Source of the DNA: Fonticula alba ATCC 38817
Lineage: Eukaryota; Protista; Nucleariida
DNA: 15,363 bases
Assembly (NCBI GenBank): GCA_000388065.2
Contig: KB932202.1
Reading direction: 5' to 3' (one strand)
The notes under the pieces are model-generated. The model was not told where the DNA came from. It made no database searches and saw only the letters and a program-made list of their open reading frames with translations. Shown piece after piece: positions 1,731-13,628 of this stretch. The stretch's first letter is position 1. Every line of letters starts with the position of its first letter. A program made the translations under genes and the position numbers.

Positions 1731-4700
1731 GAGGCCGAGGATGCCTTCCCGGTGCCGACTCGCCCGGTGCCGGACGCCGCCGGCCGCGGCGCCTCCACAT
1801 GCTCCATCAGTGTGGCCGTGCGCTTCCGGCCGCTGGACCGCGCTCGCGCCGGTGACAACGCCCTGCCCGCCTGGCTGATCAGCCCCCAGGGCAAGACCGT
1901 CCAGGCGGATCGTGCTGCTGCGGCTGCCGCGGCCGCGGCGACCCCACAGCCGCGCGACAGCCTGGCCCCCGGCGGGCCGACCTTCCACTTCGGTGCGTCC
2001 CGGCCGCCGGGCCGGCAGGCCACGCTGCATGCTCCTCCTCTGCCTCTGCCGCCTGTGTCCGCTCGCTGCCTCCCATCTCCGTGTCTCACCGCCCTCTCCG
2101 TTCCCCCTCCCCCGCCCGCTGGCCCAGACCACGTCTTCGACCATGCCGCCACCAACGAGGCCGTCTTCGACACCTGTGTCCATCACATTGTGCAGGCGGC
2201 CCTGCGCGGGATCAATGGTGCGCGCAGCCCCCCCCCTTCCTCTTCTTGTTGCGCCCCCTCTCGTCCTTCTCCGCTGCGCACGCGCGCGGCGCCCCCTCTC
2301 CCCACCCCCCCCCACATACACTGACATGCCAGCCACGGCACCCCCTCTCCATCGTCGCCCAGGCACCGTCTTCGCATATGGCCAGACCGCCTCCGGCAAG
2401 ACGCACACCATGTCCGGCAGCGCCGGCGACCCGGGGCTCATTTCCCGCGCGCTGGATGCCCTCTTCTCCCTCTCGGCCCAGGTACGCGGCACTCGGGCCC
2501 AGCCCCCGACGCGGCCATTCCAGGCCCCCCCCCCTCCTCCGCACTGACCCGCCCCTCTCCCCCCCCCCCCGGTTTCGGCCACCATGCTAGGACCACACAC
2601 GCACATACTCCTTCCGCCTGTCGTACATGGAGATCTACAATGACAACCTGCGGGACTTGCTGCAGCCCGGCTCCGGGACCACCATGCGCATCATCGAGGA
2701 CGCGCGCGGCGAGGTGCGCGTCCTCGGTCTCAAGGAGGTCCCGGTCGAAGCCCTGGACCAGGTCCAGCCGGTCCTCCGTGCCGGCGAAGGTACATACCAT
2801 TGCACCGGCTCGCCTGGCCCCGGGGGCCAGCCGCCGCCATCCCCGCTTGGTGGTGCTGACCGCCTTGTTGCCCCCCCCAGTGGGAACGATAGGAGACATG
2901 CTGGCGTGGCGCCAACAACAGGGGGGGGTGCGAAGAGCGAGACACCCCATCTCCGTGGATCTGGACATTGACGGCAGCCAAAAGCGGTCCCTGCCCTAGT
3001 GAGAATCGAACTCGTTTGCCTGCCCACCGAAGCCCCGCCCACTAAACCACAGCACCAAAATCGCCGGAAGGCCGGCGGCGCCAGGAAAAATAGCATTTAA
3101 ACCACGGCCTCGCGCGCCACACGGGTCGACCGTTTCTTGCTCCCCGCGCCGCCCCTGGGCGGCCGGGGGGGGGGGGGGGAGACGCGCCAGCGATCGATGT
3201 GTCCCCACCCCCTCACGTCCATGTTCCGTCCGTTGGGCACATTCCCGCTCTCCCCGGCCCCTTCTCGCGCTCGGGGGTCTCCCCTTGTTCCCCCTTGCAA
3301 TCCGCCCAGCGGGGGGGGGGGGGGGGGGAACACAGGAGCTCCCTCCGGAGAAGGAGATCGGCCCCAGCGGTGGCACCCCCTTTCCCCCGGTCCTCTCCTC
3401 CGCCCTCGCTCCTGACTCGGCCAAGCGGCCGGCCCCGATCGCGGCGCCATTCTTCCGCGGCCCCTGTGCCGGTGCCAGCCACCCGGCATGCGCGCACGTC
3501 TCTCCCTCCCTCCTCGCGCCTTCGGTCTCAACCCAAGCCCTCGCTCCCGCGCCCCGCCTTTGTCCCTCCCTCTCTCTTTCTCTGCCTCCCTCTCCCGCCT
3601 GTGTCCTCTCCCCCGCTTTCCCGCCTCTCGCTCCCCCCCCCCCCNNNNNNNNNNNNNNNNNNNNNNNNNNNNNNNNNNNNNNNNNNNNNNNNNNNNNNNN
3701 NNNNNNNNNNNNNNNNNNCCTTCCGCCCAGCCGAGCGTCACGTCGGCTCGACAAACATGAACGACCGGAGCAGCCGGTCGCACACCATCCTCCGCGTGGC
3801 GGTGGAGAGCCGACCGGCCGCCTCGCCGGCGCCCGGCCCCGCGGGACCCGGCGCCCCGGCCCTCGGCGCCGTGCGGATATCCTGCCTGAACCTGGTGGAT
3901 CTGGCCGGGTCGGAGCGCGCGCGCAGCACCGGGGCCGAGGGGCTTCGCCTGCGCGAGGGCGGCGCCATCAACCGCAGCCTGCTGGCCCTGACGAATGTCA
4001 TCGCCCGGCTGGCGGCCGACCCGACCTCCGAGGCCGGCCAGCACATTCCCTACCGCGACTCGCGCATCACGCGCGTGCTGCAGAACTCCCTCGGCGGCAA
4101 TGCCCAGACGGTCATCATCTGCACCGCCACCCCGGCCCCCGGGGACTTCGAGGAAACCCTCAGCACGCTGAAGTTCGCCTCCCGGGCCAAGGACGTCAAA
4201 AACCGCCCGCAGGTCAACGAGGTCCGTGACCGTCTGCCCGCCTCGGTCGGCCATGCTCGCCTGCCCCTCGCCGCCTTGCGCGCCTGCTCCTGGGGACTCA
4301 CCTGCTCCTCGCCTTTTTTTTTTCTTTTTTTTCTTTTTTTGCTCCTTCCCTGTTCCTCCCCGTTGCACAGGTCCTCCCGGACTCGGTGCTCATCGAGCAG
4401 TACCGCCGGGAGATCGCCCGGCTGAGTGTCGAACGAGACCAGCTGCTCCGCTGGTCGTCCCTGGGCCCGGGGCCCGAGCCCGGCCCCCTGGCCACGCCCG
4501 AGCCCCCCTGCGCTCGGTGCTCTTTGGGGCCGGAGCCGGAGCCCGGGCCGGAGCCGGAGCCGGAGCCGGACCCCGGGCCGCCGGGCCCCGATGCAAATCT
4601 CCTGCAGCAGCTGGAAAGCCGCCTCCATGTGGCCGAAGCCCATACGGCCCAACTGCAGGAGGACCTGCACGTGCGTGGGTCGGCGGTCCGCTCGCTCGAG

Positions 4701-6613: not shown

Positions 6614-7022
<409 letters not shown>

Positions 7023-7316: not shown

Positions 7317-8244
7317 GAAACGACACCCCCTCTCCCTGCTTCGTCGGATGCACTGACCGCCGGCCCCTCGGCAGACCAGCAGCTCTTGGCGCGGCTGCTC
7401 GAGCAGCCCGAAATCCCCCAGGCCCGCAATGTGGCCATCTATTGTGCGGACGCCGGGGAGCAGCGCGGCGAGGTAGACACCGACACCCTGGCGGCCACCC
7501 TGCTGGCGGCCGGCAAGCGCCTGTTTGTCCCGTATGTCTGGCCGCCGGGGGCCACCGACGCCGGGGGCCTGGCCAGCGGCTGCCGCATGGACATGGTCCG
7601 GGTCCGAGACCTGGAGGCCTGGCGCGCGCTCCCGGTCGGGCGCTGGGGCATCCGCGAGCCGATCATCGACCGCGACACGGAGTTCGGTGCGCCCGTCCCG
7701 CCCCCCCCCCCCTCCACCTGGCGCACGATATTGACAACCTCCCTCGACAGCTTACTCGGCCGCAGGCGATCCCACCCCACTGGACCTCATCATCATGCCC
7801 GGGCTTGGTTTCGACGCCCAGGGCGGGCGCATCGGCTTCGGACGCGGGTGCGTCCCGGCCCCGCCCCAATCACACCACCTCCCTCCTCCTCCTCCTCCTC
7901 CTCCTCCTCCTCCTCCTCTCGCGCACACCCCCTGCCAGCCACTGACCCCGAACAGCTATTACGACGAGTATGTGCGCTTCTGCGATCGGTGGGCCGACGC
8001 CCGCGGCACGCCACGGCCGCGCCTCCGTGCGTCCCTCCTCCCGGCATCCACCGCCCCCCTTGGCGCTCAGGCGCACCCGCCCGACTAACTCGACCATATT
8101 CGTGCGCCGGACCGCCCGCCCGCCACAGTGGCCATGTGCCTGCCGGAGCAGCTGGTCCCCGAGACAATGCCCCGCGAGGAGCACGATCACCGGCCCGTGG
8201 ATCGGGTCATCCTTCTGCCGCCGCGCCAGATGGGTCCCCTCTGA
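7135..8244 (+). CDS. MTHFS: 5-formyltetrahydrofolate cyclo-ligase (methenyl-THF synthetase), about 232-237 aa; exons 7135-7252, 7375-7686, 7751(or 7766)-7847, 7956-8026, 8129-8244
   Basis: Family motifs K..LRQ.LR, VAIY, EVDT, GKRLFVP, WGIREP, LDLIIMPGLGFD..G.RIGFGRG|YYDEY and EQLV...HD..VD.VI. Splicing restores the GxGxGYYD motif exactly. Donors are GTGCGT/GTGCGC and branch sites are CTGAC, TTGAC or CTAAC. Stop TGA at 8242-8244. Confidence 0.92.
7278..7311. repeat. (TG)17 microsatellite in MTHFS intron 1; a (CTC)n tract lies in intron 3 at about 7880-7917
   Basis: Read directly from the sequence. Confidence 0.95.
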
Positions 8245-11472: not shown

Positions 11473-12036
11473 TCAGGCGTGCGAGTGCTCGACCTGCAGC
11501 AAGGGACCGGGGCCCAGGCAAGGGCGGCGCAGGGGGGCGGCGAAAGGAGGGCGGGGGGGGGGGGGATGTTAGATCGGGAGGCCTTTTCCGGGAAGAAGGT
11601 CCGGCCAAGGGGCGGGGGGGGGGGCGTGCCTTCTTCAGGTCGCTCATGTTGGTGGTGCCGGCGCCGATGCCAAAGACGTCGATGCCATGGATGCGCGTGG
11701 TCTCAGCGCCGTGGTTGGACTGGACGAAGATCTTCGTGGTGACAGGCGGTGCGGAGGTCAGGAAGGGGGGGTGCGCATGTGGTGGTGTGCCGGCGTGGCG
11801 CCGGAACCCCGGAGCAGGAGGGCGTATATGGATGGGCGTGTGCCTGCCTGCTGGGGCCAGGACAGGGCCCCGACGTACGGTGATGTTGGACACGCGCTGG
11901 AAGCGCGCGATCCGCAGGGGGATGTAGCACCCGGCAGCCAGCGAGGCGGCCGTCAGATCGGACTCCTGGGGTGGGGACAGCTGTGTGTCAGTGCCAGAGC
12001 CCTGGTCGCGGGGGGGGGGGGGGGGGGGGGGGGAAT

Positions 12037-12135
<99 letters not shown>

Positions 12136-12272
12136 CGGCATATGCGAGGGGGGAGGGGCGGTACGCACAAATGCCGCGGTCAGGGAGGACCCGTTCTCGA
12201 AGGACACGTCGTCGCGATTGACAAACACCCGAATGCGCTTGGGCGCGGAGTCTGGCCACGCGTCGTGCGTGT

Positions 12273-12786: not shown

Positions 12787-13628
12787 GGATGCGGGGGATG
12801 GGAGGCGGGGGGGGGGGGAAAGAAAGGAAAAAAGCCGGGGTGCAAGGGACAACCGCGGCAAGGGGGCAGGAGGTGCGGGGCGAGGGGCTGGGGCGGTGGG
12901 TGCTGGCCAGGGCCCGCAAGGCAGCGGGCGGCTGCTGGCGGTGAGCCGGGCGAAAAATGGCCCCCATCGTCCGACCGGCGAGCAGGGCGGCCGCGGTGTG
13001 TCGCCTCCCGAGCCCCGCCGATCGCGGGGCACATTCGCGCGCGCGCGCGCGCGCCTAGACGCGCCGACGACGCGGGTCCGATCCCCCGGCGGAAAGGCGG
13101 GAAGGCCGCCCCGGCGGCACAAGCGTCTAGAAGGTGGTGTTGCGGTCATGTCAAAAGGCCGATCACATGAACGCCGGTCAGTGGGGACCTCGGCCGGGGG
13201 ATTTCGGCGATCGCAGCGTCGCGATCGCCCTGGCGCCCCTCCTCACATCGGTGGTGCACTCTCCTTCGGCCTCCTGCCGAGCCGCCCTATCCCCCTCCCT
13301 CGCCTTTTTCCTCGCCCCCCNNNNNNNNNNNNNNNNNNNNNNNNNNNNNNNNNNNNNNNNNNNNNNNNNNNNNNNNNNNNNNNNNNNNNNNNNNNNNNNN
13401 NNNNNNNNNNNNNNNNNNNNNNNNNNNNNNNNNNNNNNNNNNNNNNNNNNNNNNNNNNNNNNNNNNNNNNNNNNNNNNNNNNNNNNNNNNNNNNNNNNNN
13501 NNNNNNNNNNNNNNNNNNNNNNNNNNNNNNNNNNNNNNNNNNNNNNNNNNNNNNNNNNNCCCCCCCCACCTCCGCCTCTTCGCCCTCCCCCTCACCTCCC
13601 AAAAGAACTCCCCCTCTCGGACGCCAGC
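12787..13628. promoter_or_regulatory. Divergent (head-to-head) promoter region between the PITH gene and RINT1, including a 239-N gap (13321-13559)
   Basis: Flanked by the two divergent ATGs. Contains (CG)9 at 13036-13053, three CGATCG sites and a 9-bp inverted repeat. Function is inferred from position only. Confidence 0.6.

Follow-up and report, generated by a model that had tools for sequence, protein, structure and literature searches.

Boxes A and B are common to all tRNA-derived genes, and vault RNAs are ~80-150 nt long. Vault RNA genes are transcribed from a type-2 promoter that is composed of boxes A and B (PMC7904556). Rodent BC1 and 4.5SI are single genes descended from tRNA genes; they carry boxes A and B together with an upstream TATA-like box, and their RNAs fold as a hairpin and not as a cloverleaf. 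In the 4.5SI promoter, the TATA-like box lies at -31/-24 (PMC10137851). Here, we have analyzed a stretch of 15,363 nt from contig KB932202.1 of the Fonticula alba ATCC 38817 genome (GenBank assembly GCA_000388065.2; hereafter the window), in which a small unit with the parts of a Pol III gene lies on the minus strand. We conclude that it is a complete Pol III-type unit that arose by descent or selection and is not a chance match. The reading we prefer, with about even confidence, is that of a solitary tRNA-derived Pol III relic with tRNA-Gly-type boxes, antisense in a kinesin intron.

The host gene is on the plus strand and belongs to the kinesin-7/CENP-E type, which is mitotic. The parts of this gene that surround the unit are listed below.

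2612 to 2789 (5' limit approximate), plus strand: kinesin motor exon 5' of the intron; ORF translation 2627-2789, RNA contig 2612-2787.
2790 to 3730, plus strand: host intron of the kinesin-7-type gene, with GT..AG ends; a transcriptome contig joins 2789 to 3731.
3645 to 3718, no strand: run of N (assembly gap) in the host intron, adjoining a poly-C tract.
3731 to 4221, plus strand: kinesin motor exon 3' of the intron; Pfam Kinesin match (E 4e-50), RNA contigs, donor at 4222.

Pieces of the kinesin motor were identified by Pfam on both sides of the intron, and the best relatives in the kinesin search were from early-diverging fungi, at no more than 64% identity. With a minus-strand unit, a plus-strand gene of the kinesin-7/CENP-E type and splicing confirmed by RNA, the predicted position of the unit, antisense within an intron of a mitotic gene, was borne out. 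It had also been pointed out that this intron alone is long, which agrees with our measurement of 941 nt versus ~130 and 149 nt for the neighbouring introns, a length that is nominal because the run of N at 3645-3718 lies within it. As a separate observation on this gene, the donors at 2482, 2790 and 4222 read GTACGC, GTACAT and GTCCGT, with C at +4 in all three.

The features of the unit itself are given below, numbered along the minus strand with +1 at position 3056.

2980 to 3056, minus strand: body of the Pol III-type unit, 73 nt plus a T4 run; the joint motif of box A, box B and T4 is unique in the window.
3086 to 3101, minus strand: AT-rich (TATA-like) patch, -45 to -30; only three AT-rich clusters of 16-mers, this one included, occur in 15 kb.
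3057 to 3077, minus strand: 6-bp GC hairpin CGCCGG/CCGGCG with loop CCTT, followed by A and a T4 run; immediately 5' of +1.
3039 to 3049, minus strand: box A TGGTTTAGTGG, +8 to +18; the sole exact match to TRGYNNAGTGG in the window.
3002 to 3012, minus strand: box B AGTTCGATTCT, +45 to +55, located by pattern search.
3001 to 3013, minus strand: T-arm-like hairpin around box B, with a 3-bp stem and the loop TTCGATT; the sole part aligned by the tRNA covariance model.
2980 to 2983, minus strand: T4 run, Pol III terminator-like, +74 to +77, read from the sequence.

The AT-rich patch is composed of TTTAAAT at -45 to -39 and CTATTTTT at -37 to -30. Box A, box B, the T4 run and the upstream AT-rich motifs were all recovered on the minus strand where the original prediction had placed them, and its description of a type-2 Pol III anatomy with an upstream TATA-like patch stands, with box A, box B, T4 and the AT-rich patch all present. 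Only the distance between the boxes had to be amended, from 27 nt to the 26 nt that we counted. The unit therefore has an internal type-2 promoter (box A plus box B) and an oligo-T terminator. Two side observations concern the immediate surroundings. An 11-nt near-repeat, GCYGTGGTTTA on the minus strand, occurs at 3043-3053 and 3098-3108, that is, at the start of box A and in the left half of the AT-rich patch, 55 nt apart; it could be the trace of a partial duplication or a product of chance, and it is uninformative, as 500 nt of sequence would contain roughly one such repeat by chance alone. At position 3115, 59 nt upstream of +1, all three DNA runs compared with the window, including that of the source organism itself, read T where the window has C, which is probably a base error in the assembly.

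Taken singly, the two boxes occur in the window about as often as chance would have it. Box B, with up to two mismatches, had 12 matches versus 13.9 expected, and box A had one match versus 0.39 expected, both of which are within chance. We then considered their ordered combination in random sequence, 60 Mb of which was generated by a first-order Markov model with the composition of the window. In it, a single case of box A with the box B core 15-45 nt further on was observed, which corresponds to an expectation of ~0.5 such pairs per 31-Mb genome, and the same pair with a T4 run 8-30 nt downstream occurred 0 times. Upstream of the unit, 16-mers with at least 13 A/T were found at only three places in the window (0.15% of positions), and one of the two places outside the unit coincides with the polypyrimidine tract in the intron that follows. 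Four T4 starts are present on the minus strand of the host intron, all of them at the unit. Because of the ordered combination of box A and box B (with T4) and the rare AT-rich patch, the unit is regarded as non-chance.

It had been predicted that the unit is not a tRNA, and we agree, since ARAGORN, Rfam and a custom tRNA covariance model recovered no cloverleaf. ARAGORN called no tRNA at the unit with its defaults, nor when introns were permitted; lowering the thresholds to 80% yielded only a poor model, shifted in register, whose anticodon stem has 3 bp and whose position 33 is a G. The Rfam tRNA model had no match in 301 nt or 85 nt of sequence, neither at the gathering score nor at E≤10. 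The custom model, which was built from 38 tRNAs of 12 isotypes that had not been selected by pattern, aligned nothing beyond the T-arm hairpin of 13 nt (10.2 bits, E 0.37). When the unit is laid out in tRNA register, five of the seven acceptor pairs and three of the five T-stem pairs are found, the anticodon stem is absent, and the part preceding the T-loop is ~5-7 nt short for a tRNA. Several unusual kinds of tRNA were rejected as well. For an intron-containing tRNA, the ARAGORN models were implausible, and removal of an intron would shorten the 66-nt body further. The sequence is not that of a selenocysteine tRNA, being too short and having neither a UCA anticodon nor a long variable arm. 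As for a split or interrupted tRNA, the candidate 3' half near 2853-2860 has no preceding T-arm. This site, on the minus strand at ~2853-2860 and ~190 nt downstream, is perfectly complementary to the 5' acceptor strand of the unit and is followed by ACCA; it is taken as chance.

The identification of the unit as a vault RNA, or as having a vault-like architecture, found no support: the unit has no match to Rfam Vault, is too short, and has a panhandle whose z score is only -1.41. Neither Vault (RF00006) nor Y RNA nor any other Rfam family matched the 301-nt and 85-nt sequences, at the gathering score or at E≤10, a result to be read with the possibility that the RF00006 model may be insensitive for distant lineages. 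The unit measures 73 nt if counted up to the T run and 77 nt if the run is included, and both lengths fall under the vault range, which the original prediction gave as ~80-140 nt. Vault RNAs (RF00006) and the unit have in common a type-2 promoter, an oligo-U end and a predicted pairing of the 5' and 3' termini, whereas the unit differs from them in lacking a covariance-model match, in being shorter and in having a fold that is not significant. In the literature searched, no paper linking Fonticula alba with vaults was found. Y RNA was rejected on the absence of an Rfam match and on promoter type, which is internal here, whereas that of Y RNA is external (type-3). A companion-promoter arrangement as in trypanosomes was also rejected, as no Rfam RNA lies divergently upstream. 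With BC1 and 4.5SI, the unit shares boxes A and B, an upstream TATA-like box, a hairpin in place of a cloverleaf and, on our reading, descent of a single gene from a tRNA gene; however, their RNAs are expressed and conserved within a clade, whereas for the present unit no covering RNA contig and no conservation signal were found.

The panhandle that had been folded by hand was reproduced by RNAfold. It is the minimum free energy (MFE) structure, at -26.9 kcal/mol, and includes the helix 11-19/54-62 (pair probability 0.98-1.0) and the pairs 1-3/69-71. In this structure, box A is paired with the stretch after the T-loop (pair probability ~0.98), which is not the case in tRNAs, and a forced tRNA-like fold reached only -9 to -10 kcal/mol versus -26.9 kcal/mol for the panhandle. 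Shuffled sequences folded at -22.6 ± 3.1 kcal/mol (z -1.41), and 18 of the 200 shuffles folded as well as the unit. The stability of the panhandle is ordinary for the composition of the unit.

In the contigs of the source genome run, exactly one contig covers the element at 80% likeness or more. Its depth at the element is 22.3, equal to that of the flanks, with no loose ends listed at the element borders, and depth spikes in this run are confined to poly-G/C tracts. No second copy of the unit was found in the 15-kb window. Since it is present as a single copy at this likeness in the contigs of the source genome, the unit is not a young SINE or a member of a young repeat family. Target-site duplications around the unit were not found, and diverged relatives of it were found neither among the matches listed from the metagenome pattern scan nor in the kinesin search. 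In the only RNA run of this organism in which the stretch occurs, contigs span the exons as well as the splice junction, and none lies over the element; it should be noted that this is weak evidence because the library is unlikely to contain a Pol III RNA of ~75 nt. RNA runs labelled as an unrelated, well-studied organism were left aside. Near-identical DNA (~99% over window positions 2300-4300) was detected in two other runs, one labelled as another, much-sequenced organism and the other a soil metagenome, and therefore Fonticula alba or a very close strain is present in those samples. Strain changes number 0-1 in the element and 1-2 in the flanks, a divergence of ~1% that is too little to read constraint. 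G3029A, seen in one of the two strain runs, turns C28 of the element into U, which leaves a wobble pair at this place in the MFE fold, and A3083C is present in both near-identical runs.

Some other properties of the window may be recorded here. A poly-C tract at 6751-6899 and a poly-G tract at 11990-12138, each ~130-150 nt, form an inverted pair with 5.1-kb spacing and 93-97% complementarity, and many shorter poly-C/G tracts are spread across the window. Two segments, 1501-2000 and 13001-13500, have 42-46% GC versus 63-84% GC elsewhere in the window, and blastn detected no similarity between them. A Pfam match to 5-formyltetrahydrofolate cyclo-ligase was observed at ~7374-7673 on the plus strand (E 1e-5, just under the cut-off) and one to the PITH domain at ~11624-11734 on the minus strand (E 6e-6); both are probably exons of neighbouring genes.

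With regard to origin, the boxes provide the most direct lead. At least 120 loci in metagenome contigs carry both box strings, and all of those listed hold ordinary tRNAs. Among the matches listed, which are mostly prokaryotic tRNAs, 109 of the 117 tRNAs called by ARAGORN are tRNA-Gly, and thus the box pair is considered to be of the tRNA-Gly type. Because this pair is typical of tRNA-Gly, a tRNA-derived origin is a simpler account of the unit than a new class of Pol III RNA. The box A and box B strings are identical to those of tRNA-Gly genes. The unit differs from such genes in the spacing between the two strings, which is 25 nt versus 31 nt among the matches listed (1-2 longer), in having no anticodon arm, and in having no Gly-type acceptor stem, its acceptor sequence (GGU...) not being Gly-like. 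The five of seven acceptor pairs lie exactly 5 nt beyond the T-loop, a register that ~9% of random sequences would match. Compared with tRNA pseudogenes and look-alikes, the unit is similar in having box A, box B with a T-loop, an oligo-T stop and partial acceptor and T stems in register, in being intragenic (here, in an intron) and in being unable to decode; it is different in that its body is shortened and its anticodon arm unrecognisable, yet its promoter parts are all perfect. Partial tRNA features in register without a working cloverleaf, which is what defines a relic, are what the unit displays.

On the basis of the two boxes and the weak acceptor register, descent from a tRNA gene appears to be a plausible inference. 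The relic would have lost its anticodon arm and kept box A, box B with the T-loop, the AT-rich patch and T4. If these parts still work, TFIIIC would be recruited by box A and box B and would position TFIIIB at the AT-rich patch, and Pol III would make an RNA of ~73-77 nt ending in U; this RNA would be unable to decode and would be expected to fold as an irregular hairpin and not as a cloverleaf. The unit may thus still be transcribed into a non-decoding RNA of ~73-77 nt, and it presumably has no function of its own.

Several other explanations were weighed against the tRNA-derived relic. The most substantial of them holds that the unit encodes a functional non-tRNA Pol III small RNA with a type-2 promoter, one that either founds a new class or is vault-like but very short, and that would act via its panhandle hairpin. 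The Pol III anatomy is complete, including the rare upstream AT-rich patch, the predicted hairpin has very high pair probabilities, and the tRNA parts have disappeared whereas those of the promoter are perfect, all of which would suit such an RNA. However, no Vault, Y RNA or other Rfam family was matched, the 73-77 nt are under the vault range, the stability of the fold does not exceed that of shuffles (z -1.41), one of the few strain differences falls inside the element, neither the window nor the contigs of the source run yielded a second copy or paralogue, and no RNA contig covers the element, although this last point is weak, as the library is probably without small RNAs. We therefore regard a functional small RNA as unlikely, and the vault version accounts for only a few per cent of the share given to it. 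The stronger form of the idea, an expressed and functional hairpin RNA of ~73 nt that would represent a new small-RNA class or, at the far end, a miniature vault-type RNA, is quite unlikely. Of the original suggestion of a new Pol III RNA class, the part that stands is that the Pol III-type unit is real; RNA coverage, a conservation signal and a second copy, which would speak for the class itself, were not found. Perfect promoter parts beside a ruined body could also hint at selection for Pol III activity or binding, a hint that is not to be trusted because the element was noticed for its perfect boxes. The same contrast between perfect promoter parts and a degenerate RNA body, together with the location within a Pol II gene on the opposite strand, would fit an element acting at the DNA level, that is, a TFIIIC/Pol III site affecting chromatin or kinesin transcription much as ETC sites or tDNA barriers do, for which the RNA would be irrelevant. 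Since ETC sites usually need box B only, whereas the unit also keeps box A, the AT-rich patch and a terminator, we consider this very unlikely.

The remaining two explanations concern how the motifs came to lie in the intron. If tRNA-like motifs had come together by chance in GC-rich intronic DNA, each box alone would be within expectation, as was observed, and covariance models would give no significant match, which was also the case; moreover, ~0.5 A+B pairs are expected per 31-Mb genome, and the genome was read as a whole for such features. What argues against coincidence is that the combination of A, B and T4 never arose in 60 Mb of random sequence, that an AT-rich patch, independently rare (0.15% of positions), lies at the proper distance, and that the T-loop is perfect at seven of seven positions, with a compensated 52:62 pair. 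A chance assembly therefore has little probability in our view. The unit might instead be a SINE head of tRNA origin, or an organellar tRNA look-alike copied into the nucleus, either of which would account for tRNA-type boxes without an anticodon arm. With respect to a SINE, no other contig of the source genome run reaches 80% likeness over the element, target-site duplications are absent, and the T4 run at +74 means that there is no SINE body. With respect to an organellar copy, the middle part of the unit is very GC-rich, unlike typical organellar DNA. A look-up by sequence gave no match, although a blank of this kind means little. A SINE or organellar origin is accordingly the account to which we attach the least probability, and a very small one.

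Should the unit be no more than a relic, it would be the kind of by-product that tRNA gene turnover ordinarily leaves, and its main value would be as a caution that perfect A and B boxes do not imply a new class of RNA. If it is transcribed and has been retained, it would join the very small number of non-tRNA genes with a type-2 Pol III promoter that are known outside animals, and it would open a way to study how Pol III promoters are built, the TATA-like patch upstream included, in a lineage close to the fungal root that has received little study. Were it to encode a functional small RNA, such an RNA would come from the deepest branch on the fungal side of the opisthokonts.
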